Source of the DNA: Lepidodermella squamata
Taxonomy: Eukaryota > Animalia > Gastrotricha
Direction of reading: 5' to 3'
Assembly: GCA_047495785.1 (NCBI GenBank)
Contig: JBLDXI010000021.1
Span: forward strand, 2,610,225-2,674,224
DNA length: 64,000 nt
The translations under genes were made by a program, and so were the position numbers. Numbering within the stretch: position 1 is the stretch's first letter; every line of letters begins with the position of its first letter. Below, piece by piece: positions 5,775 to 64,000 of the stretch. The notes under the pieces are model-generated. The model saw nothing but the letters and a program-made list of their open reading frames with translations. It did not search any database and was not told the DNA's origin.

Positions 5775-7878
5775 ATGGAAGATTTCACCGACAGCCTAAC
5801 AGAACAGGTCATGACACATTATGGCGTTGAAGCCGCGGGCGATTTCGCCGAAGACCTTACTGCTGCAGATTGGGCAAGAATTAATGGTAATAGCCAATAT
5901 CATTTTTTTACAACAAAAATTAATTGCTGTCGTTGTTTCTTTAGCATGGTGCCAGTCAGATGATGCGCAAGCACAAGAGCCAGTCGTTGCCGCATTACCG
6001 CCGCCTGCTCCTACGTCATCGCCCACGCAAGTTTTAGGCCGTTTCGTGGTTAGCGCAGTTGGCCTTAGAACGGAGACCGAGATAGCGAGTTTCGCTACGG
6101 TCATACCGCCATCAGCTTACCATCGTCAGCGCCACGAATGTCTTTGCGAATTCGTCAGCCCGAGTTTCGGTTGTCTTCGGCGGCAAAGCACAGGCAGCTG
6201 CCTTCCAAGACCTCGGCCATATCCGTTTGCCTCTGGAAGACCGCCTCGTTTACCTGCAAAATTTCATGCCTATTCACCGCTCAACAGGTGTTCTCTACAA
6301 CATCCCTAGCGATGCCGAAGCAGAACGTTTTTTCGCGAAGCTAATCGACGAGCACTTCAATGCGATTGTGCCGATTCGCGATTGCTCCTCGCTGGCGACG
6401 AAGTAGGCGTTAAAAGGCTAACAAAACAATGCAGAGATAAAGCGAAGCGCAGCGTTTTTGTCGCTCGTCTTCCGCTCGACGTCACCGATGAAGACCTTCG
6501 CCTGTTAGCTTCTGGGAAGATTCTCGCCGAGATTATTATACGTGATAATGACCCGCGTTTGAATGCTCGCCGCAAGTCAGCAATCATTCGTTTCACAAGC
6601 CAACAAGAAGCTGTTGATTTCCTCGAAGCCGGTGGGCATTTCCGTGTCGTTCGCAACTGCGGAGTGGTCATTGACTTGATGGGTGCAGCGCGGCGCCTAT
6701 TCAATCACGAGGTGTACCGAGAAGATTGGGCTGCCGACGATCGCCTCGTTTACCTGACGGGTCTGCCGTTAGATGTCACGCTGTTTCAGCTGAAAGCTGC
6801 CTTCCCCGGCGTCACCGTTCATATGTACGCTCCATTTCGAGCCGTTTCACACTTCGCCTCACTCGAATTCGCTACGCGGGCCCAACGCGTCGATTTTTGC
6901 AACACCAACACAACGCCTTATGGTGTCATACAACCTGCGAACTCGATCTGCTCTACATTGATTGGCAGTTTCGAGGGGAAGCTGGCTTATTTGCCAAGCG
7001 GAAGGTTCTGGGAAAGCGAACCTGGCGAGCCCGAATTTTACGCAGCCAACACATTCTCACCCGAAGATCTGAAGATCGTCTTGGGCACTCAAACAGACGG
7101 CGACGTTGAGTCCATAGCCAAGGACAAATTGAGTCGCATCCTCGACGAACGCCTCTCAGGTGACCTCTTTGGAGCGGTTGAGAACGAGCTAAAGCGATTT
7201 CATGGAGATGCTGGCTCTGCCGCAGTCTCGGAATTTCGCCGTTTACGGAATGCCAGGCGCCAATCCGTCGTCTACACTCGGTTTTTTTGCCCCACAAACA
7301 ATGACACGATGTGTCCTCTTCAAATTTACTATCGCTTGCCCGAAGGCAGCCACAAAGCCAATCTGCGCGACTTGCTGTCGACGGAAATGACCCATCAAGC
7401 TTTCCTGAACGCCTTCTATAAGTTCTTGGAGCATCTCACCAGAGATGGAGACTTGATGGGTCGTTATTTAAGCCAGCGTCATCTGGGCTGCCGCGTTAAC
7501 TGCAAGGTGGATAATCTCAACTCCATCGACTACTGCGGCTACATTACCGAGAAGCTCGCCTTTCTAGGCGTAGAAAAGGAACATTGCTATGCCAATACTG
7601 TTTATATCAACTTTGATATCATCGGGTCGGATCTATTTTACATCGGTGCCTCGTGGCGAACATTCCTGCGTCCTGATGAACATCGGCGCCTGATGTATCA
7701 GCAAAAACTTAACAAAACTTTGGGTAATTTCTTCTTTAGGCAACGTTGCCCTTGCCCGTCGAATCCTTTTCGTTGCGTCATTTTGAAAGTTGCACCCTGT
7801 GCTTTCTACCTTGAGCAGCGCCTCATCGATGTTTGTTGGAATTTTATTTCTAACCTTGAGCGCTATCCGAGATATTAG
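5775..7878 (+). CDS. Protein with two RRM domains and a C-terminal GIY-YIG-like nuclease domain
   Basis: ORF 6382-7878: RRM1 (SVFVARLPLDVTDEDL...SAIIRF), RRM2 (LVYLTGLPLDVT...FASLEF), then TVY-x11-YIGAS..R..EH..LEQRLI..N. Exon 5775-5886 splices in frame (intron 5887-5944) to the same frame; one TAG at 6307-6309 unresolved. Confidence 0.72.
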
Positions 7879-40957: not shown

Positions 40958-43014
40958 TTGGTAATAGTTTAATACAGACGAGCTGCAAACCGGGGCCTCT
41001 CGTTTTACCGAGAGTCAAACCGGGCCCTACCATTACTCCATCATAGGTATCCAAGATGAGCATCATTTTTATGTTTGTGATAATTCTTCATCACAAAAAT
41101 TATGTGTTCCTAACCACTCCGCGATAATACTGAGATCCGATAAAAAATTCCCGACAAATGGCTCAAAGGAACTCAGACAAAATTTGTATTCAAAGAATGA
41201 ATACAATTCAATCAGAAGAATGACCCAGGGGAGTCATTTTCTGTTTGATCTTATTTTACCATGACCCAGGGGAGTCAGGCAAATTATTTATTTTACCATG
41301 ACCCAGGGGAGTCAGGCAAATTATTAATATTTCACCATGACCCAAGGGAGTCAGGGAAATTACAAAGGATAGAATTAGAAATAAATAAATTGTAAACATT
41401 TCAACATAAGTCTACTGCCTTGGAACAGTTTCATAACTTTGAAAAAATTACTTCAAATTACATCAATATTCGTCAAACGTTGAAGCAAAAGTTATGAAGG
41501 GTTTTACACTAGTGCCCTCAAACTTACTATATGTTGAAAACAAAGTTTAACAGATAGTGCTGTTGAAGAGCGATTGATAATTTTACAGTCTTCGAGAAAG
41601 ACTTTTATAAGCTTCTTTGATTGAATGGCTGCGTAAATTATTTGTTCGCCAGATTTTGCCAATCGTCGTGCCAAGTCAAGTCACATGGATCTTATTCATG
41701 CGTTGTATTTAATTAGCGAGTCGTTCTTTATGAATGAAATAAAATTCCAAGCTCAAGTCACGTGCAAACTAAAGCACATAAAAAATTATTTCCAAGATAT
41801 TTCGATGATTTTGCGCTAAAGCCGACCAACGAGAAAAAAATTCCTATACAGAGTACTGCGCACAATAAGAAGTACTACGCGCGCATAATATTATAAGATA
41901 TACTTATAGCCCGCATTCTGTGTGAAAAAAATGAATGTACTGGACAAATGACCAACAAATATAAGTGCGCTTTTGTGGATGTTACCATGAAATCTTCTGC
42001 TTACCTGGTAGAGAACTGTCGAAAGTATCAGGAAATCGATAGAAAAGCATGTGCAACCGTGGGTTATTCACCGCTAGGCGACTTGAAAATGATCTGAAAT
42101 CGCAAAAACCTTGGAAAAATGCACCCACTGGTGTCTTGAGCGGCGTTTCTGCGAAAACCAAAATGGGTTCACCCACAGTTTTTCACATTCCCTAGCCGAG
42201 CACATGGATAGCTTATTAGGGAAGTAAGAAATAGCCAGTTAATATGGAGGACATCCACGGCTTTTCAGTATTTTCCCTCCCGGCTTGAAAATCGTGGAAA
42301 AATCGAAAATTGTATGTTTTTAGTCGCTCTTATCTCGAAAACACCCATGGTTGCACCATAGCTTTTTGTGGTCAAATAGGAGAAGGCACTAGGAGGAAGG
42401 TTTTAACAGGGAAAACAGCAAGAACCACCCCAACTTATCCAAGACTTTTTCGTCCTGATTAGCACTCACTACGTCACACCCAACACCTCGAAAATGCATG
42501 GCCTGGCGTCTTTTGGGGCATTGCTGCAAGAAAGAGCATGGGTTCAACCACAGTTTTTCACGTCCTTTAGTAGAGCACAAGAAGATCTTACTCAGGAAGT
42601 AAGAAATTGCCAGTAAATGCGGTGTTTATCCACGGGTTAAGAGTCTTTTCTCTCCACATCCGATTCAAGTCCGAATCGAAGAGAAAGTGAGGATTTTTCA
42701 TCTTTCATGGCACTTATCTTGAAAAAACCCGTGGCTGCACCATAAGTTTTTGTATTCAAACAGTAGAGGAGATTGAGAAGAAGGTTTCAAAAGAGAAAAC
42801 AGCACGAACCACGACAACTTATCCACGACTTTTTCGCCTTGATGGACAATCACATTTTAAGCTCAAAATCGAACTTCAAAACTGGGCTATTCACCTTACC
42901 TTACGCGGCAGAGCCCTTATTTCACCTGTAACAAGTTGAATGAAGCGCATACTTCTTATAAAATAGCAAATATGCGGGTGCTACCATGATTTGCCATGAT
43001 TTTCCATTCGGTCC
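40958..43014 (-). mobile_element. Non-coding telomere-attached segment C2 (diverged relative of element C)
   Basis: First ~85 nt after the telomere tract are homologous to the start of C; bounded by telomere tracts; internal 37-41-bp repeats x4 (41220-41360) and a diverged ~375-bp duplication (~42170-42860). Confidence 0.6.
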
Positions 43015-43069: not shown

Positions 43070-44027
43070 TAGGGTTAGTACTATGGTCCTCCGGTTCAAT
43101 GTATTGCAAATTTTCAAGCAAAACTTTCCACCCCGTGACCAAGTTGTCACGGAGGTTCGTGCTGGTCATTGAGGCGCAGGCTTGACGCCACGCGTTGACG
43201 AATTCTTCACGCGGTTCGCCGAGGTTGATGCCGCGGGCCTTGCGGATGACCGTAACCGAGCTGCCTTGACTGCAGACGCTGTTGAAGGCGCGAGCGGTGT
43301 AGAGCGGTAGCGAGTCGGGGTCGCAGTAGAGGAACGCTTGCGACGCGTCGTCGTAGGCTAAGTGGGCGGCACCTGCGTGAGCCCAGCCGGAGCGGAGGCG
43401 AAGCGAGGTGACGGTGGCGGCGGCGAAACTGTCGCGTTCTGCAACGACTTTCGGGTCGACGAGCGAGTCTGTGGGAAAGAATTTGTTCATGCCATTAATA
43501 AAATTTCTTTCATGTGGCGTATAGCCGCCGCTGTTAACAGCAGTGCTAATGCGCGCCCGAATAATAAAATGATTAATAAATGATGCAAGCTTGGCCTGAT
43601 ATCGCTCGAGGATATCGTGACGGTGCTGTTGCTCGAGCCGTTGACGACGGTTAGAGGGCGGTGGTGGCGGCGGTGACGCGTTCCTTGGAGCACGATTGCT
43701 CGGAGCGGGCGGACGCTGCTCTCGCCATGAGCGGTCGCGATAGCGGTCTTCTCGGTCTTGAGGACGGTCTTCGCGGTAGTAATGGCGGTCGTCGCGGTAG
43801 CGCTGACGGTCTTCGTCACGGTGACGGTGTTGTTGTCGATGTTGATCGTCTTGTTCGCGGTAACGCGATTGAGACGGCGGCGGTGGTTGACGATGGCGAC
43901 CGGCGGTTGATGTCGAATTGTGGTAGACATAACGGAAGCCGCCAATGTAAGCGCGCTTCGCCGGATCGTTGTTGGCCGTGGTGAACCCGTTGTAATTATT
44001 TGCAACAAAGCGATTGTGATTTGACAT
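43070..44027 (-). CDS. Family A ORF1 N-terminal half (pLTR copy)
   Basis: MSNHNRFVANN... homologous to B ORF1 MSNRNRFVSNN...; runs into telomere repeats as poly(NP). Confidence 0.8.
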
Positions 44028-45052: not shown

Positions 45053-46858
45053 CTAACAGTCTTTAGTGCGGCAGAGCTGCTTGACCAGCGACGGGCCGAG
45101 GCGTGTGACGACGCGATGCCGGTGCCGTTTGGCGACGTCGAGTAGTGGCTGCAGACCGCGAACGAACTTGGTTTCGTGCTCCGGCCGCCAGTCACGATCG
45201 ACCGGTCGCGAGTCAGCACGGTGTCGTAGAAACGGCCAGTCGAGGCCGGCGCAGCCGTCGACAACGCTGCGGCAGATTGCGAAGACGTCCGCGTCGTGAT
45301 AGCCGTACTTGCTGGCGGAGGCGGCGAGACTGAACACGGCCGAGGCCAGGTCCTGTGTGTTGTTACAAATTCGAACAAAATTAAGTAAACGACCAGAAAT
45401 AGCTGCACGTAAGGTGGAAAGAGGGTGATTAGAATCTGCGTGCAATAAAGGCAGCGCATTCATAGGCTTAAAGTAAACCCCTGTTCGAATTGAACCGTCT
45501 TCAAACTTCTGCATTCGCACGTCGAGCACGTTAGCGCAGTCGTTGCTGATGTCGATTTCCAGTTTGATGCGAGGGTGCAGCGCGCTGTAGCCATTGCCCA
45601 GGTTGACGGCGGCTTCGTGGCTGGTAGCGACCGCGAAAATGTCGTCTCGGTAGCGTTTGAACAGTAGGAGGCCCTCGGAGCGGGCGACGAGGTCGCGTTC
45701 GAGAACGAAGAGAAAGGCGTCGGCGACGACGGGCGCGGTGTTCGACCCCATCGGGATGCCGTGCACTTGCCGATAACGAGCGCCTGCAAATAGAAAAATA
45801 TTGAATTTAAGCGTGATTTTTAATATTTCGACAACAAGATGGCGTTCTGCCTGAGACCCGATACTGTTCTCGCGCAGTAGTAGTTCGATAGCGGCGATGC
45901 CTTCGTCGATCGGGACGTTGGTGTAGAGATCGCTGACGTCGGCGGTGAAGAACGTAGCGTCGAGACCGCTTGTGTCGATTGACCGCACGGCTGAAAGCAG
46001 GTCGATTGTAGACATCGCACACGTCGTCATGAAGTAATTCAGCGGTTTACAGAAGGCGGCGGCGACCTTGTCTGCGGCTGCGAGCGCGGTACCTAGACAG
46101 TCGACGATCGGGCGAATCTTCGGTAGACCATCGACGTCGTTCGGTTTATGCATTTTCGGCAAGAAGTAGATGTACCGGTCACGCGTTGGCACGAGGTCGA
46201 GACCGCGGAGCAGCTTGCGTTGCGCCGCGGTACCTGAGGCGTTGATTCGCTCGACCAGAGTCTTCATTGCTTCCAGCCCGGCGGTTGACTCGTCTTCAGT
46301 GGCGTTGACGTAGTTGGCGGTTGACAGATGCTTCGTTGCCATTCGGTTGTAGTCTTCTTTCTTGAGATAGACCATGGCCGAGCCCTTATCCGACTTCTTA
46401 AAGACGCCGTTGTTGCGGAGCGCCTTGATTCGTCGCAGCTGCGGGTCGTCGTTGAGCGGGCCGATTGTGAGCGTTCGGGCAGGCTGAGCGTGACGGATGA
46501 CAACTTGGCCGTTGATGCCTACGATAGGCCCTACGAAGCGTTTCGAGAACGGTACCGCTGGGACCGAGACGTCGTAGCGGTGATCGGCTCGCGGTTGAAC
46601 GGTTGCACCTAGAAGATCTGACATAGATTTTAGTGAGGCAAATTTTTCTTTTTTAGTAAAATTTATAATTTTAAGGCCCCGCTCGAGTGCCTGTTTCTCG
46701 GCGGGCGCCAAACTCCCTGTCAGATCAATGACTGACGGCAGGGAACAGCGGTGAAGGCTGAAGGCGGTACCATTCTGGACAAGGCACGACATGCCCGTCA
46801 GCCCTAGCGACTTTAAAAAACGAGATCGCGGCTTTTCGATGCCTCCCTGCCTTGTCAC
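45053..46858 (-). CDS. PLE reverse transcriptase, family A, no GIY-YIG
   Basis: YFLPKMHK, IRPIV, FTADVSDLYTNVP, QVHGIPMGS, RYRDDIF, NVLDV, thumb YFKP..LHADSNHP; stop ~100 aa later. Confidence 0.95.
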   Translation of the reverse strand: MTRQGGIEKPRSRFLKSLGLTGMSCLVQNGTAFSLHRCSLPSVIDLTGSLAPAEKQALERGLKIINFTKKEKFASLKSMSDLLGATVQPRADHRYDVSVPAVPFSKRFVGPIVGINGQVVIRHAQPARTLTIGPLNDDPQLRRIKALRNNGVFKKSDKGSAMVYLKKEDYNRMATKHLSTANYVNATEDESTAGLEAMKTLVERINASGTAAQRKLLRGLDLVPTRDRYIYFLPKMHKPNDVDGLPKIRPIVDCLGTALAAADKVAAAFCKPLNYFMTTCAMSTIDLLSAVRSIDTSGLDATFFTADVSDLYTNVPIDEGIAAIELLLRENSIGSQAERHLVVEILKITLKFNIFLFAGARYRQVHGIPMGSNTAPVVADAFLFVLERDLVARSEGLLLFKRYRDDIFAVATSHEAAVNLGNGYSALHPRIKLEIDISNDCANVLDVRMQKFEDGSIRTGVYFKPMNALPLLHADSNHPLSTLRAAISGRLLNFVRICNNTQDLASAVFSLAASASKYGYHDADVFAICRSVVDGCAGLDWPFLRHRADSRPVDRDWRPEHETKFVRGLQPLLDVAKRHRHRVVTRLGPSLVKQLCRTKDC

Positions 46859-47751: not shown

Positions 47752-47842
47752 AGGGTTAGGGTTAGGGTTAGGGTTAGGGTTAGGGTTAGGGTTAGGGTTA
47801 GGGTTAGGGTTAGGGTTGGGGTTAGGGTTAGGGTTAGGGTTA
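47752..47842 (+). repeat. Telomeric tract ~15 units (one TTGGGG variant)
   Basis: Direct reading. Confidence 0.97.
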
Positions 47843-48024
47843 TTGTAATGATTTAATACAGACGAGCTGTAAACCGGGGATTCTCCGAAGAGAATGACAC
47901 CGGGCCCTACCACTACTCCCTCGGGAGCCGATCCAGAGAACGTGGTCTCAGTGATCAGAACAAACAATGGAACGATCGGAAACCGCGCGAGATTAATCCG
48001 ATAATATTCAATATCAGGACCACG
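47843..48024 (-). mobile_element. Short 5'-truncated copy of element C
   Basis: Matches 48104-48285; flanked by telomere tracts. Confidence 0.85.
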
Positions 48025-48103
48025 AGGGTTAGGGTTAGGGTTAGGGTTAGGGTTAGGGTTAGGGTTAGGGTTAGGGTTAGGGTTAGGGTTGGGGTTAGGG
48101 TTA
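48025..48103 (+). repeat. Telomeric tract ~13 units (one TTGGGG variant)
   Basis: Direct reading. Confidence 0.97.
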
Positions 48104-48460
48104 TTGTAATGATTTAATACAGACGAGCTGTAAACCGGGGATTCTCCGAAGAGAATGACACCGGGCCCTACCACTACTCCCTCGGGAGCCGATCCAGAGA
48201 ACGTGGTCTCAGTGATCAGAACAAACAATGGAACGATCGGAAACCGCGCGAGATTAATCCGATAATATTCAATATCAGGACCACGAGGGGTTCGCCGATA
48301 TAATTAGATAGTCACGGGGGACTGCTGTATAAACTCGCAAACATTAATTAAACAAGTTCATTACCGAAACTCCAAAGAACGTTGTCGTTTGTAACTGCTT
48401 AAACCAGTTAAACCAGCAATTGTAACTGCATAAACCATGAATGAAATGGAACCGTAAACT

Positions 48461-48529
48461 AAGAGGTAGCCTTTATCAGACCGGTTTCGCTACTTGGCTA
48501 GGGTAGCTCATCAGTGACTTTTACCTCTT
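48461..48529 (-). ncRNA. Type I hammerhead ribozyme with full stem II and extended stem I (element C)
   Basis: AAGAGGUA-AAA-GUCA-CUGAUGA-GCUAC-CCUAGCCAA-GUAGC-GAAA-CCGG-UC^UGAU-AAAGGC-UACCUCUU. Confidence 0.92.
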
Positions 48530-48816: not shown

Positions 48817-51026
48817 GAGCAACATGTGATGAAATTTGAAACCTCAAAAAATTAATTTTAAACTTAGAAATAGGTCATTTGGCATCGCTCTGGAACCTTT
48901 TCGGTCAACGTAACTGGCAACGTGACTTGATATTCACGATCAGCGGTCCTTGTAGTACTAATTCCGTGAAATATTCATGACTTGGTTCAGGATTGAGCTA
49001 CTTGTGATGAAATTTGAGACCTCAAAAAATTAATTTTAAACTTCGAAATAGGTCATTTGGCATCGCTCTGGAACCTTTTCGGTCAACGCAACTGGCAAAG
49101 TGACTTGATATTCACGATCAGCGGTCCTTGTAATACTAATTTCGTGAAATATTCATGACTTGGTTCAGGATTGAGCAACTTGTGATGAAATTTGAAACCT
49201 CAAAAAATTAATTTTAAACTTCGAAATAGGTCATTTGGCATCGCTCTGGAACCTTTTCGGTCAACGCAACTGGCAAAGTGACTTGATATTCACGATCAGC
49301 GGTCCTTGTAGTACTAATTCCGTGAGATATTCATGACTTGGTTCAGGATTGAGCAACTTGTGATGAGATTTGAGACCTCAAAAAATTAATTTTAAACTTC
49401 GAAATAGGTCATTTGGCATCGCTCTGGAACCTTTTCGGTCAACGCAACTGGCAAAGTGACTTGATATTCACGATCAGCGGTCCTTGTAGTACTAATTCCG
49501 TGAAATATTCATGACTTGGTTCAGGATTGAGCAACTTGTGATGAAATTTGAAACCTCAAAAAATTAATTTTAAACTTCGAAATAGGTCATTTGGCATCGC
49601 TCTGGAACCTTTTCGGTCAACGCAACTGGCAAAGTGACTTGATATTCACGATCAGCGGTCCTTGTAGTACTAATTCCGTGAGATATTCATGACTTGGTTC
49701 AGGATTGAGCAACTTGTGATGAGATTTGAGACCTCAAAAAATTAATTTTAAACTTCGAAATAGGTCATTTGGCATCGCTCTGGAACCTTTTCGGTCAACG
49801 CAACTGGCAAAGTGACTTGATATTCACGATCAGCGGTCCTTGTAGTACTAATTCCGTGAAATATTCATGACTTGGTTCAGGATTGAGCAACTTGTGATGA
49901 AATTTGAAACCTCAAAAAATTAATTTTAAACTTAGAAATAGGTCATTTGGCATCGCTCTGGAACCTTTTCGGTCAACGCAACTGGCAAAGTGACTTGATA
50001 TTCACGATCAGCGGTCCTTGTAGTACTAATTCCGTGAAATATTCATGACTTGGTTCAGGATTGAGCAACTTGTGATGAAATTTGAGACCTCAAAAAATTA
50101 ATTTTAAACTTCGAAATAGGTCATTTGGCATCGCTCTGGAACCTTTTCGGTCAACGCAACTGGCAAAGTGACTTGATATTCACGATCAGCGGTCCTTGTA
50201 GTACTAATTCCGTGAAATATTCATGACTTGGTTCAGGATTGAGCAACTTGTGATGAAATTTGAAACCTCAAAAAATTAATTTTAAACTTCGAAATAGGTC
50301 ATTTGGCATCGCTCTGGAACCTTTTCGGTCAACGCAACTGGCAAAGTGACTTGATATTCACGATCAGCGGTCCTTGTAGTACTAATTCCGTGAGATATTC
50401 ATGACTTGGTTCAGGATTGAGCAACTTGTGATGAGATTTGAGACCTCAAAAAATTAATTTTAAACTTCGAAATAGGTCATTTGGCATCGCTCTGGAACCT
50501 TTTCGGTCAACGCAACTGGCAAAGTGACTTGATATTCACGATCAGCGGTCCTTGTAGTACTAATTCCGTGAAATATTCATGACTTGGTTCAGGATTGAGC
50601 AACTTGTGATGAAATTTGAAACCTCAAAAAATTAATTTTAAACTTAGAAATAGGTCATTTGGCATCGCTCTGGAACCTTTTCGGTCAACGCAACTGGCAA
50701 AGTGACTTGATATTCACGATCAGCGGTCCTTGTAGTACTAATTCCGTGAAATATTCATGACTTGGTTCAGGATTGAGCAACTTGTGATGAAATTTGAGAC
50801 CTCAAAAAATTAATTTTAAACTTCGAAATAGGTCATTTGGCATCGCTCTGGAACCTTTTCGGTCAACGCAACTGGCAAAGTGACTTGATATTCACGATCA
50901 GCGGTCCTTGTAGTACTAATTCCGTGAAATATTCATGACTTGGTTCAGGATTGAGCAACTTGTGATGAAATTTGAAACCTCAAAAAATTAATTTGCAACT
51001 TCGAAATAGGTCTTTTGGTTTCGCTC
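48817..51026. repeat. 178-bp tandem repeat, ~12.4 near-identical copies, inside element C
   Basis: ggtc[a/t]tttgg at 48873, 49051, 49229 ... 51009. Confidence 0.97.
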
Positions 51027-51327
51027 AAGAGCACCTCGTTCCCCTTCACAGCCCCTTTGGTTTCTTGGTGATACATTGTACCGAACGGGCAAGATCAGTT
51101 AGGGTTATTGTAATGATTTAATACAGACGAGCTGTAAACCGGGGATTCTCCGAAGAGAATGACACCGGGCCCTACCACTACTCCCTCGGGAGCCGATCCA
51201 GAGAACGTGGTCTCAGTGATCAGAACAAACAATGGAACGATCGGAAACCGCGCGAGATTAATCCGATAATATTCAATATCAGGACCACGAGGGGTTCGCC
51301 GATATAATTAGATAGTCACGGGGGACT

Positions 51328-51489
51328 GGGTTAGGGTTAGGGTTAGGGTTAGGGTTAGGGTTAGGGTTAGGGTTAGGGTTAGGGTTAGGGTTAGGGTTAG
51401 GGTTAGGGTTAGGGTTAGGGTTAGGGTTAGGGTTAGGGTTAGGGTTAGGGTTAGGGTTAGGGTTAGGGTTAGGGTTAGGGTTAGGGTTA
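51328..51489 (+). repeat. Telomeric tract (GGGTTA)27
   Basis: Direct reading. Confidence 0.98.
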
Positions 51490-52460
51490 ATTAGTAAGCT
51501 GCGGTCCGCCTGTATTTTGTTTTGCGCAAGGTGATAAGTAAAAGCCTGCCAGCCCTTCGTAACGTTGGTGAGCAAGTCAGGGCTGCGCATGGCGCGTTTC
51601 ATTTCGTTGCAGGCGCATTGAAATTGTTCGTAGATCGCCGGCCAGTAGATGTTGCTCGACTTGCGCAGGACTCGTAGCACGCTGTTGCTGCTCGCGACAG
51701 TGTTGAAGACCCGCGACGTTTGGGCCGCTCTGTCCGACGGATGGCAGTAGTTTGCTGCTTGGCGTGCATCGGTGAACGCACTTTCGAGAGCTTGCTCGTG
51801 TCCTGTCATGGATTTATGACGTATCTCGGAAACAACATTGTAAAAAAGCAAATCAACGATGCCCTGAGTGCTAGCTTCGAACCGATGCTCGCGCGGGAAA
51901 AACTTCTCGAGCACTGGCCGGAGTGCCTTCTCGTGAGCGGTGGTGGGTCTCTCGTTTTGAGGTTTGGCGTAGTCTTCACTGAAGTTGGCTGTGGCGAGCT
52001 TGGCTAAAATGAAGAAATGATGAATAAAATTGTTGAGTTTCTCGCGGAAGCGATCGAGGAGATCTTGTCGATGTTCCCTCGCTCGACGTTGCCCTTCTGC
52101 TGCTGCCTTAGAAGGTAGCTGCCTGTTGTCCGTTGAGTCTTGCGGTCGCTTCGTACCATCCGCGTGCCGACGGTCTGACTGAGCGTTCGAACCAGACCCG
52201 TGCGAGCGACTGGAGCGGCCGTGCGTAGCACCCTCGTGCGAACGGTAAGATCGAGTGTTCGAACTGGACGCTGCTGCGGAGACTGTCTGTTTCGAGCGGC
52301 TTTGATGACGATCGCGCCGTTCTTGTTGATAGGGCGGATTGTGACGACTCGAGTTGTAATAGACGTAGCGGAAGCGGCCAAAGATGGCCCGTCCCGGGCG
52401 GTCGTTGTTAATTTCTGTAAACCCGTTGTTATTAGAAACAAAACGGTTACGGTTAGACAT
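51490..52460 (-). CDS. Family B ORF1 N-terminal part (pLTR copy)
   Basis: Nearly identical to the first ~325 aa of 54910-57405; reads into telomere as poly(NP). Confidence 0.8.
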
Positions 52461-53237: not shown

Positions 53238-55064
53238 CTAGCAGTCTTTCGTTCGGCAGAGTTGCTTGACAACGCTTGGACCGAGTCGGGTGACGAGACG
53301 AATGCGTCGCCGGCGTGCGATGTCGTACAGTGGCTGTAGTGGCCGAACGAACTTCGTTTCGACCGGTGGTCGCCAGTCTTGTTGGTAGCGAAAGTTGTCG
53401 ACACGATTGCGTAGGAACGGCCAGTCTTGACCTTCGCAACTTGTGATGACGTCGTGGGCGAGCGCAAAAACATCTGCGTCGACGTAGCCGTACTTGGACG
53501 CGGAACTGGCGAGGCTAAAAATGGCAGAACACAAGTCTTCTGTATTATTGCAAATTCTTAAAAAGTTTAAAATGCGCCCTGTGACTGCGGCCCGGAGAGT
53601 CGATTCTGGGTGATTGGAGTCAGCGTGTAAGAGAGGCAACGAGTTCATGGGCTTGAAGTAAACGCCGGTTCTGATGGAGCCATCGGGGTACTTGCTCAGG
53701 CGGACGTCGAGAACATTCGCACGCTCGGAGCTGATCTCGACTTCGAGCTTTATACGTGGATGTAGTGCGCCGTATTCGTTGCCTAGCGTGACTGCGGCCT
53801 CTTGAGTGGTGCAGATTGCGAAGACGTCGTCTCGATACCGTTTGAACAACATCACGTCGGTTTGGCGTTCGACCAGATCGCGCTCGAGCACATAGAGGAA
53901 CGCGTCCGCTACGACTGGGGCACTGTTGGAGCCCATCGGAATTCCGTGCACCTGACGATACTGAATGCCTGAAAAATAGAAAATGTTTGAATTAAGTGTT
54001 ATTTCGAGCATTGCGACGACGAGGTCGCGTTCGGGTGCGGTTCCGATTGCGTTCTCGTCCAACATGGTCTTGATCGCTGCGATTCCTTCTCCAATCGGTA
54101 CGTTGGTGTACAAGTCGCTCACGTCTGCGGTAAAGAACGTGACGTCGCACCCGCTTGAGTCGATTGCGCGAACAGCGTGTAGTAGGTCGATGGTAGACGA
54201 GGCACAGGTAGTCATGAACCGGTTAAGCGGTTTGCAGTAAGCTGCGGCGACCTTGTCTGCGGCGGCGAGCGCTGTGCCCAAACAGTCGACAATCGGCCGA
54301 ATTTTCGGTAGACCATCTACGTCAAATGCCTTGTGCATTTTTGGTAAAAAATAAATATGACGATCGCGGGTTGGCTCGAGATCGAGCCCGCGTAACAGCT
54401 TGCGTTGTGCGGCTGTACCGGTTGCCATAACGCGGTCGACGAGAGTCTTCATTGCTTCGAGGCCTCGCTTCTCTTCTGATTCTTCGGCGTGCACATAGTT
54501 CGCTGTAGTGAGATGTTTGAGCGCCATTTTCGAGTAGTTCGCCTTTGACATGTAGACCATCGCTGCACCTTTGTCAGATTTCTTGAATACGCCGTCTTTG
54601 CGGAGGGCGCGTAATCGTCGTAGCTGTGGGTCGTCGACGATGGGACCGAGCCGTACTGTGCGAGCTGGCTGTGCGTGGCGGATAACGACTTGTCCGTGGA
54701 TCCCGATAATCGGACCAACGAAGCGCTTTGAGAACGCTACAGAGGGAACCTTGACGTCGAGGCCGTGGTCGGGACGAGGGACGACGGTTGCGCCAAGGAG
54801 ATCTGAAATGACATTAACACAGGCAATTTTATCTTTTTTCGTGAAATTAATGATTTTAAGGCCACGCTCGAGTGCCTGTTTCTCGGCTGGCTGGAGAGTT
54901 CCCGTCAGGTCAACGACGGACGGTAGAGAACAGCGATGCAGCGTCCCGTACGCTCCGTTTTGGACTAGGGATGGGATGGCCCTGAGCCCGAGCGATCCCG
55001 CGAAACCGCGACGCGATGTCTGCGTGTCTGTCTCCTTTTTCGTGCTTCTCGCGGATGTGTGTGA
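53238..55064 (-). CDS. PLE reverse transcriptase, family B copy 1 (frame open from 55064; first ATG 54560)
   Basis: Same motifs as A (YRDD); 168 stop-free codons upstream of the ATG, most homologous to the A N-terminus (LVQNG..LHRCSLPSV.DLTG..EKQALERGLKIINFTKK). Confidence 0.93.
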   Translation of the reverse strand, partial: SHTSARSTKKETDTQTSRRGFAGSLGLRAIPSLVQNGAYGTLHRCSLPSVVDLTGTLQPAEKQALERGLKIINFTKKDKIACVNVISDLLGATVVPRPDHGLDVKVPSVAFSKRFVGPIIGIHGQVVIRHAQPARTVRLGPIVDDPQLRRLRALRKDGVFKKSDKGAAMVYMSKANYSKMALKHLTTANYVHAEESEEKRGLEAMKTLVDRVMATGTAAQRKLLRGLDLEPTRDRHIYFLPKMHKAFDVDGLPKIRPIVDCLGTALAAADKVAAAYCKPLNRFMTTCASSTIDLLHAVRAIDSSGCDVTFFTADVSDLYTNVPIGEGIAAIKTMLDENAIGTAPERDLVVAMLEITLNSNIFYFSGIQYRQVHGIPMGSNSAPVVADAFLYVLERDLVERQTDVMLFKRYRDDVFAICTTQEAAVTLGNEYGALHPRIKLEVEISSERANVLDVRLSKYPDGSIRTGVYFKPMNSLPLLHADSNHPESTLRAAVTGRILNFLRICNNTEDLCSAIFSLASSASKYGYVDADVFALAHDVITSCEGQDWPFLRNRVDNFRYQQDWRPPVETKFVRPLQPLYDIARRRRIRLVTRLGPSVVKQLCRTKDC

Positions 55065-57405
55065 TCAGACCATTGATTGAGCAGCTCTTGCCGACGTGGC
55101 CGCATCGTTTGCCGCTCGGTAGCTTGAAAGCGCACGACCACTTGCCGTTGTGAAACTCGACGAGTATCGACGGATCGCGTATCTTTTCTTTCTTCCACCA
55201 TTCGCGGGTGAACTCTGCTTTGCTCAAGTTCTTCTGTATGGCGTAGTCTTGCTTTGATAGCGTGGTCGTCGTATCACCCTGCTCTTGACGGACCGACTGA
55301 GCGTTCGAACCGTGCATCGGTGGGTTGTGCGCAGGCGGTCGCGATGCCGGTGCCAGGCGTTTGAGACACGTTCCGGGTTGCCCGTACATTTGTTGCGCCG
55401 AGATCGCTTTGACGACGGCGGGCTTCTTGGACGGCGCCGGAAGTTCTGTTGGTGACTTGTCTTTCGGGCTGGTGGCACGAGCTCGCTTGGTGGGCACCGA
55501 GGCGTTTGGCGCACCTGGTCGAGGAGCGTTCTGCGAGACCGCGTTGATCGCTTCACCGAAGAACGAGGCGACCGAGCTGACATCTGAAATAGAATTGCAA
55601 TTATTAAAACGAGATTCGACATTGGCTGCAGCTGCTGCTAGCGCGGTGTCGCTGGCACTGTCGATCGGTGAAGCGTCCTTGCTCGGAGTCTGAGGCAGAG
55701 GCGCGGACGTGGGCGTTAACTGGGCTGCTGTCGATTTGTCGGCAGTGACCGTTTGTGGAGTAGCCGGGCGGGCTACATTGATAGTCGTTGAGTGGTCGGC
55801 GGTCGCCGCTGAATCGCGGCTGCCACCGTTCTTGGTAACCAAGTTGCTAGCTTCAGAAGTTGACCGAGCGGTAGTCGACGCTGAACCGCGACTGTCAACG
55901 CTCTTTGAGACCAAGTTGCTAGCTTCAGAAGTTGACCGAGCGGTAGTCGACGCTGAACCGCGACTGTCATCGCTCTTTGAGACCGAGTTGCTAGCTTCAG
56001 AAGTTGACCGAGCGGTAGTCGACGCTGAACCGCGACTGTCATCGCTCTTTGAGACCAAGTTGCTAGCTTCAGAAGTTGACCGTGCGGGAATCGAGGCCAA
56101 ATCGCGACCGAGACCTCTCTTCGGTACCAGTGCGTTGATCTGAGCGGTTGAACGTGCGGAAATCCAGGTCGAATCGCGTTCTTCTGTGGTGAGCAAGCCC
56201 CAATCACCCGGGCTCGGATGGCCAGTCTGAGCGGTTGAACCGGGAGCCGCCTTGGGTGTCGGTGGTAACGCTTGACGAGCTGTTTCTGATTGACCTGTCG
56301 GCGTAACCGGATTGACGGCCGGGTCGCTTACGACCATCGGCGACGAAGACTGAATGGTGTCGTGCGCTTCAACTGTTATGTTGACAGGTGCTTCCCTTGG
56401 GGAGGCATGGACCTGAGAAAGAGAGTTAGGGTTAATTAGTAAGCTGCGGTCCGCCTGTATTTTGTTTTGCGCAAGGTGATAAGTAAAAGCCTGCCAGCCC
56501 TTCGTAACGTTGGTGAGCAAGTCAGGGCTGCGCATGGCGCGTTTCATTTCGTTGCAGGCGCATTGAAATTGTTCGTAGATCGCCGGCCAGTAGATGTTGC
56601 TCGACTTGCGCAGGACTCGTAGCACGCTGTTGCTGCTCGCGACAGTGTTGAAGACCCGCGACGTTTGGGCCGCTCTGTCCGACGGATGGCAGTAGTTTGC
56701 TGCTTGGCGTGCATCGGTGAACGCACTTTCGAGAGCTTGCTCGTGTCCTGTCATGGATTTATGACGTATCTCGGAAACAACATTGTAAAAAAGCAAATCA
56801 ACGATGCCCTGAGTGCTAGCTTCGAACCGATGCTCGCGCGGGAAGAACTTCTCGAGCACTGGCCGGAGTGCCTTCTCGTGAGCGGTGGTGGGTCTCTCGT
56901 TTTGAGGTTTGGCGTAGTCTTCACTGAAGTTGGCTGTGGCGAGCTTGGCTAAAATGAAGAAATGATGAATAAAATTGTTGAGTTTCTCGCGGAAGCGATC
57001 GAGGAGATCTTGTCGATGTTCCCTCGCTCGACGTTGCCCTTCTGCTGCTGCCTTAGAAGGTAGCTGCCCGTTGTCCGTTGAGTCTTGCGGTCGCTTCGTA
57101 CCATCCGCGTGCCGACGGTCTGACTGAGCGTTCGAACCAGACCCGTGCGAGCGACTGGAGCGGCCGTGCGTAGCACCCTCGTGCGAACGGTAAGATCGAG
57201 TGTTCGAACTGGACGCTGCTGCGGAGACTGTCTGTTTCGAGCGGCTTTGATGACGATCGCGCCGTTCTTGTTGATAGGGCGGATTGTGACGACTCGAGTT
57301 GTAATAGACGTAGCGGAAGCGGCCAAAGATGGCCCGTCCCGGGCGGTCGTTGTTAATTTCTGTAAACCCGTTGTTATTAGAAACAAAACGGTTACGGTTA
57401 GACAT
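54910..57405 (-). CDS. Family B ORF1, complete (831 aa)
   Basis: Conserved N-domain, low-complexity linker with ~4 x 24-aa (72-nt) repeats, C-terminal CX9CX14HX4H finger. Confidence 0.9.
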   Translation of the reverse strand: MSNRNRFVSNNNGFTEINNDRPGRAIFGRFRYVYYNSSRHNPPYQQERRDRHQSRSKQTVSAAASSSNTRSYRSHEGATHGRSSRSHGSGSNAQSDRRHADGTKRPQDSTDNGQLPSKAAAEGQRRAREHRQDLLDRFREKLNNFIHHFFILAKLATANFSEDYAKPQNERPTTAHEKALRPVLEKFFPREHRFEASTQGIVDLLFYNVVSEIRHKSMTGHEQALESAFTDARQAANYCHPSDRAAQTSRVFNTVASSNSVLRVLRKSSNIYWPAIYEQFQCACNEMKRAMRSPDLLTNVTKGWQAFTYHLAQNKIQADRSLLINPNSLSQVHASPREAPVNITVEAHDTIQSSSPMVVSDPAVNPVTPTGQSETARQALPPTPKAAPGSTAQTGHPSPGDWGLLTTEERDSTWISARSTAQINALVPKRGLGRDLASIPARSTSEASNLVSKSDDSRGSASTTARSTSEASNSVSKSDDSRGSASTTARSTSEASNLVSKSVDSRGSASTTARSTSEASNLVTKNGGSRDSAATADHSTTINVARPATPQTVTADKSTAAQLTPTSAPLPQTPSKDASPIDSASDTALAAAAANVESRFNNCNSISDVSSVASFFGEAINAVSQNAPRPGAPNASVPTKRARATSPKDKSPTELPAPSKKPAVVKAISAQQMYGQPGTCLKRLAPASRPPAHNPPMHGSNAQSVRQEQGDTTTTLSKQDYAIQKNLSKAEFTREWWKKEKIRDPSILVEFHNGKWSCAFKLPSGKRCGHVGKSCSINGLITHIREKHEKGDRHADIASRFRGIARAQGHPIPSPKRSVRDAASLFSTVRR

Positions 57406-58182: not shown

Positions 58183-60009
58183 CTAGCAGTCTTTCGTTCG
58201 GCAGAGTTGCTTGACAACGCTTGGACCGAGTCGGGTGACGAGACGAATGCGTCGCCGGCGTGCGATGTCGTACAGTGGCTGTAGTGGCCGAACGAACTTC
58301 GTTTCGACCGGTGGTCGCCAGTCTTGTTGGTAGCGAAAGTTGTCGACACGATTGCGTAGGAACGGCCAGTCTTGACCTTCGCAACTTGTGATGACGTCGT
58401 GGGCGAGCGCAAAAACATCTGCGTCGACGTAGCCGTACTTGGACGCGGAACTGGCGAGGCTAAAAATGGCAGAACACAAGTCTTCTGTATTATTGCAAAT
58501 TCTTAAAAAGTTTAAAATGCGCCCTGTGACTGCGGCCCGGAGAGTCGATTCTGGGTGATTGGAGTCAGCGTGTAAGAGAGGCAACGAGTTCATGGGCTTG
58601 AAGTAAACGCCGGTTCTGATGGAGCCATCGGGGTACTTGCTCAGGCGGACGTCGAGAACATTCGCACGCTCGGAGCTGATCTCGACTTCGAGCTTTATAC
58701 GTGGATGTAGTGCGCCGTATTCGTTGCCTAGCGTGACTGCGGCCTCTTGAGTGGTGCAGATTGCGAAGACGTCGTCTCGATACCGTTTGAACAACATCAC
58801 GTCGGTTTGGCGTTCGACCAGATCGCGCTCGAGCACATAGAGGAACGCGTCCGCTACGACTGGGGCACTGTTGGAGCCCATCGGAATTCCGTGCACCTGA
58901 CGATACTGAATGCCTGAAAAATAGAAAATGTTTGAATTAAGTGTTATTTCGAGCATTGCGACGACGAGGTCGCGTTCGGGTGCGGTTCCGATTGCGTTCT
59001 CGTCCAACATGGTCTTGATCGCTGCGATTCCTTCTCCAATCGGTACGTTGGTGTACAAGTCGCTCACGTCTGCGGTAAAGAACGTGACGTCGCACCCGCT
59101 TGAGTCGATTGCGCGAACAGCGTGTAGTAGGTCGATGGTAGACGAGGCACAGGTAGTCATGAACCGGTTAAGCGGTTTGCAGTAAGCTGCGGCGACCTTG
59201 TCTGCGGCGGCGAGCGCTGTGCCCAAACAGTCGACAATCGGCCGAATTTTCGGTAGACCATCTACGTCAAATGCCTTGTGCATTTTTGGTAAAAAATAAA
59301 TATGACGATCGCGGGTTGGCTCGAGATCGAGCCCGCGTAACAGCTTGCGTTGTGCGGCTGTACCGGTTGCCATAACGCGGTCGACGAGAGTCTTCATTGC
59401 TTCGAGGCCTCGCTTCTCTTCTGATTCTTCGGCGTGCACATAGTTCGCTGTAGTGAGATGTTTGAGCGCCATTTTCGAGTAGTTCGCCTTTGACATGTAG
59501 ACCATCGCTGCACCTTTGTCAGATTTCTTGAATACGCCGTCTTTGCGGAGGGCGCGTAATCGTCGTAGCTGTGGGTCGTCGACGATGGGACCGAGCCGTA
59601 CTGTGCGAGCTGGCTGTGCGTGGCGGATAACGACTTGTCCGTGGATCCCGATAATCGGACCAACGAAGCGCTTTGAGAACGCTACAGAGGGAACCTTGAC
59701 GTCGAGGCCGTGGTCGGGACGAGGGACGACGGTTGCGCCAAGGAGATCTGAAATGACATTAACACAGGCAATTTTATCTTTTTTCGTGAAATTAATGATT
59801 TTAAGGCCACGCTCGAGTGCCTGTTTCTCGGCTGGCTGGAGAGTTCCCGTCAGGTCAACGACGGACGGTAGAGAACAGCGATGCAGCGTCCCGTACGCTC
59901 CGTTTTGGACTAGGGATGGGATGGCCCTGAGCCCGAGCGATCCCGCGAAACCGCGACGCGATGTCTGCGTGTCTGTCTCCTTTTTCGTGCTTCTCGCGGA
60001 TGTGTGTGA
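58183..60009 (-). CDS. PLE reverse transcriptase, family B copy 2
   Basis: Protein from the first ATG is identical to copy 1 in the ORF track. Confidence 0.93.
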   Translation of the reverse strand, partial: SHTSARSTKKETDTQTSRRGFAGSLGLRAIPSLVQNGAYGTLHRCSLPSVVDLTGTLQPAEKQALERGLKIINFTKKDKIACVNVISDLLGATVVPRPDHGLDVKVPSVAFSKRFVGPIIGIHGQVVIRHAQPARTVRLGPIVDDPQLRRLRALRKDGVFKKSDKGAAMVYMSKANYSKMALKHLTTANYVHAEESEEKRGLEAMKTLVDRVMATGTAAQRKLLRGLDLEPTRDRHIYFLPKMHKAFDVDGLPKIRPIVDCLGTALAAADKVAAAYCKPLNRFMTTCASSTIDLLHAVRAIDSSGCDVTFFTADVSDLYTNVPIGEGIAAIKTMLDENAIGTAPERDLVVAMLEITLNSNIFYFSGIQYRQVHGIPMGSNSAPVVADAFLYVLERDLVERQTDVMLFKRYRDDVFAICTTQEAAVTLGNEYGALHPRIKLEVEISSERANVLDVRLSKYPDGSIRTGVYFKPMNSLPLLHADSNHPESTLRAAVTGRILNFLRICNNTEDLCSAIFSLASSASKYGYVDADVFALAHDVITSCEGQDWPFLRNRVDNFRYQQDWRPPVETKFVRPLQPLYDIARRRRIRLVTRLGPSVVKQLCRTKDC

Positions 60010-60179
60010 TCAGACCATTGATTGAGCAGCTCTTGCCGACGTGGCCGCATCGTTTGCCGCTCGGTAGCTTGAAAGCGCACGACCACTTGCCGTTGTGAAA
60101 CTCGACGAGTATCGACGGATCGCGTATCTTTTCTTTCTTCCACCATTCGCGGGTGAACTCTGCTTTGCTCAAGTTCTTC

Positions 60180-61061
60180 CATGGGTGGTGCTTTTCCTTG
60201 TTGCTCCCCTCAATGGGTGGCTTGTACTCATTGTGCTCCCCTATACGGGTGGCATTTCATGTTTGCTCCCCTGCACGGGTGGCTTGAATCCATCGATGCT
60301 CCCCTTTATGGGTGGCTTGAATTTGAATCCATTGGTGCTCCCCTTTACGGGTGGCTTGAAACCTTTGGTGCCTTCCTTCGCGGGTGAATTGCCATCCCGC
60401 TATACTCCTCGAGTAATGGAACTAGACGTGGTTCCTAGCATGCCAAAAACCTTAACTTTCATGTTTTGGTTCAAGTAAGGTTTCCTTCTCTAAGGAGCCT
60501 TAAGTTATGGTTCTACATACATTGTTGACCTCAACTTTATAGTTGTAGTTCAATTAAGGTTGCCTTCTCTAAGGAACCTTAAGACATGGTTCTACTTACA
60601 TTGTTGACCTCAACTTTATAGTTGTGGTTCAATTAAGGTCTCACTCTCTATGGAACCTTAAGTTGTGTTCTACACACTTTGTTAACCTTAACCTTATGGT
60701 TTTGGTTCAATTAAGGTCTCCGTCTGGATGGAACCTTAAGTTGTAGTTCTACACACATTGTTGACCTCAACTTTAGTTTTGGTTCAACTAAAGTGTGGTT
60801 CTACACAAATTGTTAACCTCAATCTTATGGTTCGGGTTCAATTAAGGCTTTTGTCTGGATGGAACTTTAAGTTATGGTTCCACGCACGACTTACGTTCAA
60901 CCTTTATTTCAATTGATCATTGAAATCGGTTTAGCCCATCACCTTACTCTGCTGCTAATCCACAGATTAAAAAGTGGTTTACTCTCCTCTCACCGTTGCT
61001 AGAGTGAAAGGGATCGCTAGAGCTTTTATGCCGGGGTTGCTTAGGCTTCCCGTCTGGTAAT
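60180..61061. repeat. Non-coding segment D with ~30-bp repeats (60181-60390) and ~78-bp repeats (~60445-60905)
   Basis: tgctccc....gggtgg x~6; ccttaag..ttctac...ttgttgacctcaac at ~60499, 60577, 60656, 60734. Confidence 0.75.
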
Positions 61062-61130
61062 TAACCTAACCCAACCCTAACCCTAACCCTAACCCTAACC
61101 CTAACCCTAACCCTAACCCTAACCCTAACC

Positions 61131-61171
<41 letters not shown>

Positions 61172-61269
61172 CCCTAACCCTAACCCTAACCCTAACCCTA
61201 ACCCTAACCCTAACCCTAACCCTAACCCTAACCCTAACCCTAACCCTAACCCTAACCCTAACCCTAACC

Positions 61270-61310
<41 letters not shown>

Positions 61311-61349
61311 CCCCAACCCTAACCCTAACCCTAACCCTAACCCTAACCC
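61062..61349 (-). repeat. Inverted telomeric tract (CCCTAA)~48 with a few variants
   Basis: Direct reading; opposite polarity to all upstream tracts. Confidence 0.98.
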
Positions 61350-63983
61350 GGTCGTAAGCGACCCGGCCGTCAATCCGGTTACGCCGACAGGTCAATCAGA
61401 AACAGCTCGTCAAGCGTTACCACCGACACCCAAGGCGGCTCCCGGTTCAACCGCTCAGACTGGCCATCCGAGCCCGGGTGATTGGGGCTTGCTCACCACA
61501 GAAGAACGCGATTCGACCTGGATTTCCGCACGTTCAACCGCTCAGATCAACGCACTGGTACCGAAGAGAGGTCTCGGTCGCGATTTGGCCTCGATTCCCG
61601 CACGGTCAACTTCTGAAGCTAGCAACTTGGTCTCAAAGAGCGATGACAGTCGCGGTTCAGCGTCGACTACCGCTCGGTCAACTTCTGAAGCTAGCAACTC
61701 GGTCTCAAAGAGCGATGACAGTCGCGGTTCAGCGTCGACTACCGCTCGGTCAACTTCTGAAGCTAGCAACTTGGTCTCAAAGAGCGTTGACAGTCGCGGT
61801 TCAGCGTCGACTACCGCTCGGTCAACTTCTGAAGCTAGCAACTTGGTTACCAAGAACGGTGGCAGCCGCGATTCAGCGGCGACCGCCGACCACTCAACGA
61901 CTATCAATGTAGCCCGCCCGGCTACTCCACAAACGGTCACTGCCGACAAATCGACAGCAGCCCAGTTAACGCCCACGTCCGCGCCTCTGCCTCAGACTCC
62001 GAGCAAGGACGCTTCACCGATCGACAGTGCCAGCGACACCGCGCTAGCAGCAGCTGCAGCCAATGTCGAATCTCGTTTTAATAATTGCAATTCTATTTCA
62101 GATGTCAGCTCGGTCGCCTCGTTCTTCGGTGAAGCGATCAACGCGGTCTCGCAGAACGCTCCTCGACCAGGTGCGCCAAACGCCTCGGTGCCCACCAAGC
62201 GAGCTCGTGCCACCAGCCCGAAAGACAAGTCACCAACAGAACTTCCGGCGCCGTCCAAGAAGCCCGCCGTCGTCAAAGCGATCTCGGCGCAACAAATGTA
62301 CGGGCAACCCGGAACGTGTCTCAAACGCCTGGCACCGGCATCGCGACCGCCTGCGCACAACCCACCGATGCACGGTTCGAACGCTCAGTCGGTCCGTCAA
62401 GAGCAGGGTGATACGACGACCACGCTATCAAAGCAAGACTACGCCATACAGAAGAACTTGAGCAAAGCAGAGTTCACCCGCGAATGGTGGAAGAAAGAAA
62501 AGATACGCGATCCGTCGATACTCGTCGAGTTTCACAACGGCAAGTGGTCGTGCGCTTTCAAGCTACCGAGCGGCAAACGATGCGGCCACGTCGGCAAGAG
62601 CTGCTCAATCAATGGTCTGATCACACACATCCGCGAGAAGCACGAAAAAGGAGACAGACACGCAGACATCGCGTCGCGGTTTCGCGGGATCGCTCGGGCT
62701 CAGGGCCATCCCATCCCTAGTCCAAAACGGAGCGTACGGGACGCTGCATCGCTGTTCTCTACCGTCCGTCGTTGACCTGACGGGAACTCTCCAGCCAGCC
62801 GAGAAACAGGCACTCGAGCGTGGCCTTAAAATCATTAATTTCACGAAAAAAGATAAAATTGCCTGTGTTAATGTCATTTCAGATCTCCTTGGCGCAACCG
62901 TCGTCCCTCGTCCCGACCACGGCCTCGACGTCAAGGTTCCCTCTGTAGCGTTCTCAAAGCGCTTCGTTGGTCCGATTATCGGGATCCACGGACAAGTCGT
63001 TATCCGCCACGCACAGCCAGCTCGCACAGTACGGCTCGGTCCCATCGTCGACGACCCACAGCTACGACGATTACGCGCCCTCCGCAAAGACGGCGTATTC
63101 AAGAAATCTGACAAAGGTGCAGCGATGGTCTACATGTCAAAGGCGAACTACTCGAAAATGGCGCTCAAACATCTCACTACAGCGAACTATGTGCACGCCG
63201 AAGAATCAGAAGAGAAGCGAGGCCTCGAAGCAATGAAGACTCTCGTCGACCGCGTTATGGCAACCGGTACAGCCGCACAACGCAAGCTGTTACGCGGGCT
63301 CGATCTCGAGCCAACCCGCGATCGTCATATTTATTTTTTACCAAAAATGCACAAGGCATTTGACGTAGATGGTCTACCGAAAATTCGGCCGATTGTCGAC
63401 TGTTTGGGCACAGCGCTCGCCGCCGCAGACAAGGTCGCCGCAGCTTACTGCAAACCGCTTAACCGGTTCATGACTACCTGTGCCTCGTCTACCATCGACC
63501 TACTACACGCTGTTCGCGCAATCGACTCAAGCGGGTGCGACGTCACGTTCTTTACCGCAGACGTGAGCGACTTGTACACCAACGTACCGATTGGAGAAGG
63601 AATCGCAGCGATCAAGACCATGTTGGACGAGAACGCAATCGGAACCGCACCCGAACGCGACCTCGTCGTCGCAATGCTCGAAATAACACTTAATTCAAAC
63701 ATTTTCTATTTTTCAGGCATTCAGTATCGTCAGGTGCACGGAATTCCGATGGGCTCCAACAGTGCCCCAGTCGTAGCGGACGCGTTCCTCTATGTGCTCG
63801 AGCGCGATCTGGTCGAACGCCAAACCGACGTGATGTTGTTCAAACGGTATCGAGACGACGTCTTCGCAATCTGCACCACTCAAGAGGCCGCAGTCACGCT
63901 AGGCAACGAATACGGCGCACTACATCCACGTATAAAGCTCGAAGTCGAGATCAGCTCCGAGCGTGCGAATGTTCTCGACGTCC
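61350..63983 (+). mobile_element. Family B copy in inverted orientation, 5'-truncated and telomere-capped; ORF1 C-part (to 62775) and RT frame 62621-63983 broken at 63983
   Basis: Reverse complement of 53702-56335; last 17 nt of the window do not match B. Confidence 0.92.
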
Positions 63984-64000
63984 ACTCTCACGAGATGTGT

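Follow-up and report, generated by a model that had tools for sequence, protein, structure and literature searches.

A candidate 3′-terminal RNA module beside the telomere-complementary tails of two non-coding retroelement units in Lepidodermella squamata

Why would two non-coding retroelement units with dissimilar bodies carry the same short predicted RNA fold immediately before a telomere-complementary tail? The question is raised by a window of 64,000 nucleotides from the gastrotrich Lepidodermella squamata (the whole stretch of DNA that was analysed; positions are counted from its first letter). From approximately 40.9 kb onward, it consists of retroelement units in one orientation, with telomeric repeats between them. 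Read along the minus strand, the order is two B units, a short C unit (51328–51099), a long C unit (51098–48101), another short C unit (48028–47840), element A (47751–43070) and the C2 unit (43014–40955), followed by host-side sequence. The fold is found in the C and C2 units. As a tentative reading, to which we give somewhat less than an even chance, we propose that it is a shared 3′-terminal RNA module of these non-coding units, which would dock the reverse transcriptase (RT) or present the tail, and which would be a non-hammerhead stand-in for the hammerhead of Athena and Terminon elements.

The surroundings of the array have features of their own. A second array, at approximately 60000–64000, is in the opposite orientation. 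Here, a plus-strand unit, D, ends at 61064 and is followed by approximately 47 CCCTAA repeats (61065–61349) and an inverted B-like copy, and 72-bp repeats at 61577–61883 mirror those at 55802–56108. Near 60.0–60.4 kb the two arrays face each other head to head, with no telomeric repeats where they meet, as after end fusion or inverted duplication. On the host side (1–40900) there are ORFs with weak RRM and Sushi matches, and a word-based protein search with the 498-aa ORF at 6382–7878 found no relatives. The Sushi-domain ORF points to an animal host, as does the metazoan-type hammerhead described below.

The fold is approximately 75 bases long. Its minus-strand letters in long C (48106–48177) and in C2 (40961–41036) were read directly and are those quoted in the original prediction. 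Two further minus-strand copies, at 47845–47916 and 51110–51181, lie in the short, 5′-truncated C units and are identical to the copy in long C. The number of copies in the window is four, on which a 12-mer taken from the fold and a covariance model agree. The covariance-model check that had been proposed was run on the window with filters off, using a model built from the window's own copies. It recovered the four copies, all on the minus strand, with scores of 103.2 bits for each of the three C copies and 88.2 bits for C2, and the next best score in the window was 10.6 bits. The three C copies do not differ from one another across the fold, which leaves C and C2 as the only independent sequences.

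In all four copies the fold lies directly 5′ of the telomere-complementary run, as was claimed for it. The gap to CCCTAA, the reverse complement of the TTAGGG telomeric repeat, is 5–6 nt and is filled by a linker that reads AAUAA in C and CAAUAA in C2. On the minus strand, linker and CCCTAA-type tail occupy 48025–48105 in long C (approximately 13 repeats), 47752–47844 in the short C unit that follows it (approximately 15 repeats) and 40916–40960 in C2 (approximately 7 repeats), beyond which unique host-side sequence begins. The tail of the short C unit at 51099–51328 has only approximately 1.3 repeats. A single CCCCAA variant repeat is present in each of two tails (47752–47842 and 48025–48103), at differing repeat positions.

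What structure is predicted for this RNA? The minimum free energy structure of each isolated segment, from C and from C2, and the RNAalifold consensus all contain the three helices of the original prediction. An 8-bp closing stem encloses arm 1 and hairpin 2. Arm 1 has a CCGG/CCGG base, an asymmetric internal loop and a 6-bp distal helix, which is capped by UUCG in C and by a loop of 6 nt in C2. In hairpin 2, a 5-bp stem carries the loop CUCGU, and the junction strands are AGGGC, UU and UUAA. The choice of strand stood up as well: the G-U pairs and the UUCG loop agree with the minus strand, and the adjacent RT genes have the same sense strand.

The third helix was lost when native flanks and tail were included. 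With 20–80 nt of upstream sequence and 17–41 nt of tail, arm 1 and hairpin 2 stay at probabilities of 0.85–1.0 in both families, but the ensemble probability of the closing stem is approximately 0 in C and in C2. In these folding models the closing stem, which makes the three-way junction, is the least secure helix. A competing closure is predicted in which GGUAGGG (48166–48172, minus strand), comprising the end of the 5′ stem strand and junction strand 1, pairs with CCCUA(A)CC in the tail of the same element, with probabilities of up to 0.95–0.99. A complement of 5–7 nt to a hexamer repeat is insignificant by itself. As the two closures compete, two mutually exclusive states may be possible, one in which the tail is free and one in which it is sequestered. 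GGUAGGG is invariant in all four copies, so covariation is unable to choose between these closures. In addition, a short terminal string that the fold-less elements A and B have as well, UAC then UAACCC, overlaps with the stem's 3′ strand, and the conservation of this strand may therefore have a cause that is independent of pairing.

Pairwise comparison of C and C2 shows where their similarity begins and ends. It is confined to an island of 92–97 nt (48092–48183 in C and 40946–41042 in C2, both on the minus strand). On the C side it starts 6 nt ahead of the stem and runs through the fold and the AAUAA linker into the tail. The island is 80% identical over 97 columns (E 2e-21) and is the sole similarity between the two units. 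Upstream of it nothing is alike, in agreement with the claim that homology ends just beyond the structure, and the bodies of C and C2 have no similarity to each other or to A, B and D.

Within the fold, 13 substitutions and a 4-nt indel separate C from C2, and 8 of the substitutions fall in paired columns. A single change is two-sided, from U-A to C-G in arm 1, and four pairs are kept by one-sided changes via G-U. In C2, one terminal A-U pair of arm 1 is absent, and a new G-C pair lies at the loop end. The junction had been described as covarying, with changes that preserve pairing. The one compensatory pair in arm 1 is in keeping with the first of these descriptions, but the wording is too strong for two independent sequences; the second holds for the one double and the four one-sided changes and fails at the one terminal pair that is gone in C2. 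No change falls in the junction strands, the CCGG base or the loop of hairpin 2. The distal part of arm 1 differs in sequence, loop and length between C and C2, yet it forms a 6-bp hairpin in both.

Two controls bear on these counts. When 13 substitutions were randomly placed on C as the starting sequence, with the observed numbers of transitions and transversions kept, at most one pair was broken in 0.8% of the trials (P ~0.008). As the structure was derived from these very sequences, the simulation is supportive and is no proof. A column-shuffle control gave 243 of 500, which is uninformative because there are only two distinct rows.

Could the pairing be accidental? If so, the fold would have no structural function, the tail would be shared by descent, recombination or template switching, and the pairing would stem from two short GC-rich palindromic stretches together with wobble-tolerant transitions. 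We consider this unlikely, though it is an explanation to be reckoned with. The fold energies are unexceptional, with z-scores of −1.57 and −1.71 and with 12 of 200 and 14 of 200 shuffles folding equally well, and these values, the number of independent sequences and the uninformative shuffle test all agree with chance. So does the closing stem, which is unfavoured in native context. Moreover, of the five changes that preserve pairing, four are single transitions opposite G or U, where pairing is kept at least about half the time by chance. Against accidental pairing stand the rarity with which random placement of the substitutions spares the pairs, the rebuilding of the distal helix of arm 1 with another sequence, length and loop, and the constancy of the unpaired junction strands and hairpin loop while the stems vary. 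The edge of homology also coincides with the edge of the fold.

The units that carry the fold have no ORF of note. The bulk of the long C body is a 178-bp tandem array (48817–51026; 12.4 copies, 97% identity), from which ORFs and a hammerhead core are absent, and the rest includes a hammerhead motif, the fold and the linker. C2 is also non-coding, with no ORF above 65 aa. Its body contains a direct repeat of approximately 350 bp (42116–42459 and 42491–42843, 72% identity) and a 37-bp tandem repeat (41251–41362).

The short C units are 5′-truncated at different points and are 100% identical to long C. As they differ in their 5′ ends, are identical in sequence and keep the module, they show the pattern expected of 3′-end-primed copying. 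Two adjacent C-plus-repeat units have a 261-bp period and are 99% identical, and these could instead be a local duplication, as an alternative to separate additions. The truncation points (48024–48028 and 51325–51328) are C-rich and overlap the adjoining repeat by a few bases, a microhomology that fits the addition of repeats onto a new end.

Does the fold belong to a known class of RNA? The original prediction had recognised no ribozyme class in it, and the fold matches nothing in Rfam 15 at E values up to 10. A search of the whole window at the gathering thresholds returned nothing for the fold. Local searches at E up to 10, including those with 361 nt and 88 nt around the fold, gave no ribozyme or telomerase RNA match, and the models for twister, twister-sister, pistol, hatchet, HDV-like, hairpin and Varkud ribozymes gave no match to it within the same limit. 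No model matched a SINE head or tail derived from tRNA, 5S, 7SL or snRNA, and ARAGORN found no tRNA or tmRNA. Outside the window, a pattern scan of metagenomes for the fold gave six matches, all attributable to chance and lacking both telomeric repeats and hairpin 2, and a scan of prokaryotic genomes and viral contigs gave no match.

The hammerhead was considered as a candidate for the fold itself and was rejected. No circular permutation of the junction strands yields the CUGANGA core that a hammerhead has between helices I and II, the fold lacks both a GAAA that would join helices II and III and a UH cleavage site ahead of helix I, and no Rfam hammerhead model matches the fold at E up to 10.

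A hammerhead is present elsewhere in C. At 48475–48518 on the minus strand of the long unit, 298 nt upstream of the fold, there is a Penelope-type minimal hammerhead of type I with the core strings, a 5-bp helix II, a palindromic helix III and a 4-bp helix I. The descriptor used, which was taken from PMC8557442, gives this one match in the window versus 0.01 expected per shuffled window; the Rfam HH9 match to the motif is weak (12 bits, E 6). In C2, no hammerhead was found. This minimal form has been described for metazoan Penelope-like elements (PMC4209133) and, as a sequence motif, it ties C to that element class.

A second explanation is that the RNA is structured and has another role, either the 3′-end protection or processing of a non-polyadenylated transcript or the activity of an undescribed self-cleaving ribozyme class that replaces the hammerhead. 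A constant core with variable helices is also seen in ribozymes, the fold occupies the site of the Athena and Terminon hammerhead, and no known family was matched. Nothing, however, indicates a cleavage site, and a canonical minimal hammerhead already lies upstream in C, while C2, which has no hammerhead, still has the fold. We regard such a role as improbable.

Which enzyme could copy the C and C2 RNAs? Element A carries an RT ORF at 45053–46858 on the minus strand, of the Penelope-like clade and without an endonuclease domain. The B units carry one at 53238–54560 (minus strand) and a second, identical one at 58183–59505. The A and B RTs are 75% identical over 440 aa, and RVT_1 is the only domain matched by the window RTs. 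Relatives at 45–62% identity are without an endonuclease, and distant relatives (28–32%) carry GIY-YIG. By domain content and identity, the window RTs are probably endonuclease-less Penelope-like enzymes of Athena type, an assignment that was made independently of any phylogeny and that does not separate Athena from Coprina. A PDB sequence search with the RT gave only weak bacterial RT matches and no TERT.

The fold is absent from these RT-bearing neighbours. Element A ends in a tail without the fold, as does the B unit that ends at 51490, and a search by folding for an analogous junction at the 3′ ends of A, B and D revealed no significant structure. The covariance model also found no fold in eight related RT contigs (L001, L002, L009–L014). 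The module was lacking in the RT-bearing A and B, in the plus-strand unit D and in those eight contigs. In A and B the tail comes directly after the last ORF, which extends to approximately 10–20 nt from it; the frame meets no stop ahead of the repeats and continues into them. A GACC-type motif lies approximately 10–20 nt before the telomeric tail in A and B (43070–43110 and 51490–51530, minus strand) and in several of the related RT contigs, including L001 and L010.

Short C-strand telomere-type runs are present on the sense strand, at apparent unit ends, in 8 of the 8 related RT contigs. Three of these contigs have terminal overlaps (99 nt in L002, 30 nt in L009 and 55 nt in L011), and these three were put together from tandem units that lie head to tail, with very short telomere-type runs at the joins. 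The CAAUAA-CCCUAA string of C and C2 also occurs in two of the eight, at 76–100 of L009 and 4131–4155 of L013. This string may be a shared terminal motif that hints at an RT lineage able to serve C-type elements.

The closest precedent comes from Athena, Coprina and Terminon elements. In reviews, these elements are described as attaching to G-rich overhangs via short reverse-complement telomeric repeats, and the repeats as lying immediately downstream of a hammerhead fold, which may expose them (PMC6431247, PMC8557442). What the hammerhead does in Penelope-like and Terminon elements has been called unknown (PMC7761336). The window resembles Athena and Terminon elements in several respects: sense-oriented units end 3′ in reverse-complement telomeric repeats, 5′-truncated units form head-to-tail arrays with telomeric repeats between them, the RTs of the window arrays are of the Penelope-like clade and lack the GIY-YIG endonuclease, and a three-helix fold stands in the hammerhead's place. 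There are differences as well. The fold in the window has no hammerhead core, and the window's sole hammerhead lies well upstream of it; the fold is on non-coding units and not on RT-bearing ones; and the repeat is CCCTAA, as opposed to the ACACCC and TCACCC reported for rotifers.

Non-LTR retrozymes, which are thought to depend on Penelope-like elements (PMC4209133, PMC7761336), offer a second comparison. Like them, C is non-coding, its minimal type I hammerhead has a palindromic helix III, and mobilisation in trans by Penelope-like RTs is presumed. In contrast to the tandem hammerheads of retrozymes, C has a single one and no sign of a circular form, and C2 has none; the distinguishing module here is instead a non-hammerhead fold with a telomeric tail. 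LINE/SINE partnerships supply a third parallel. There, the RT is believed to recognise a short structured 3′ module on the non-autonomous element, but in the present case the autonomous neighbours are without the module.

Finally, the position of the fold invites comparison with telomerase RNA. The RT clade associated with the fold is sister to TERT. The predicted helix order (closing helix, long arm and short hairpin with a 5-nt loop, from 5′ to 3′) resembles that of the CR4/5 domain and, like the boundary helix of telomerase RNA, the stem stands only a few nucleotides 5′ of a run that is complementary to the telomere (PMC4993307). In CR4/5, an adenosine between P6 and P6.1 is reported to be invariant, and P6.1 is a 4-bp stem with a 5-nt loop (PMC4993307). 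Hairpin 2 has the same loop size with a 5-bp stem, but in both families UU separates the two arms and the invariant adenosine is missing, and Rfam gave no telomerase RNA match. A boundary element also differs from this fold in that the RT copies through the fold instead of stopping there.

A third explanation takes the island for the template and 5′ domain of a small RNA of telomerase-RNA-like kind, which would have been reverse-transcribed at chromosome ends and template-switched onto unrelated RNAs. Template switching would yield a sharp edge of homology, which is found 6 nt before the fold in both families, and fragments of rodent telomerase RNA adjoin telomeric repeats (PMC2246262); the helix placed like a template boundary element (PMC4993307) agrees as well. 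However, the short C units extend beyond the fold and remain 100% identical to long C in the C-specific sequence there, which shows the C RNA to be a single transcript, and a boundary element should halt copying, yet the fold is copied. With no Rfam telomerase RNA model matching, and with tail lengths that vary like telomerase-extended tracts, this origin is quite improbable. The bolder version, in which fold and tail are a telomerase-RNA-like template domain on retroelement RNAs, a closure switch gates the template and the whole is a surviving intermediate that links telomere-attaching Penelope-like elements with the telomerase ribonucleoprotein, is very improbable indeed; if true, the junction would bind a TERT-related RT, and its helix would adjoin a telomere-complementary template.

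How, then, might a 3′-terminal module work? Under our proposal, C and C2 would attach to chromosome ends as the neighbouring endonuclease-less Penelope-like elements of Athena type do. The sense RNA, which would end in CCCUAA repeats, could anneal to a TTAGGG overhang, and an RT supplied in trans would copy it from the TTAGGG primer. The fold, 5–6 nt upstream of the tail, would be the first non-telomeric sequence to be copied. It would dock the RT, or control whether the tail is free or sequestered by means of the two exclusive closures, or both, and would replace the hammerhead of Athena and Terminon elements while lacking its catalytic core. What the analysis shows is anatomy: the letters, the two stable hairpins, the island, the surrounding elements and the lack of hammerhead core strings; binding, switching and reliance on an RT in trans are proposals. 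A role in recruiting the RT or positioning the template, as suggested originally, is an inference from position, and by analogy it would fit the published view of the Athena and Terminon hammerhead fold.

Several lines count for the fold as a shared 3′ module: its position, strand and modularity, the pattern of conservation, the truncated C copies, the RT clade, the hammerhead in C and the Athena and Terminon precedent. Against it count the two sequences with their one compensatory pair, the ordinary energies and the unfavoured closing stem, as well as the absence of the fold from the RT-bearing A and B, from the plus-strand D, from the eight RT contigs and from everything searched outside the window.

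Even if chance and two related tails account for the fold, the locus would still hold clear Athena-type arrays in a host with TTAGGG telomeres. If the 3′-module reading is right, the consequences reach the hammerhead of the telomere-attaching elements, for which it has been suggested that the fold and not cleavage presents the telomere-complementary tail (PMC6431247). A fold of similar architecture that lacks the core, located at the hammerhead's position on elements that borrow their RT, would favour this structural reading of the hammerhead fold. It would also offer a compact RNA with which to study how a TERT-related enzyme recognises its template.
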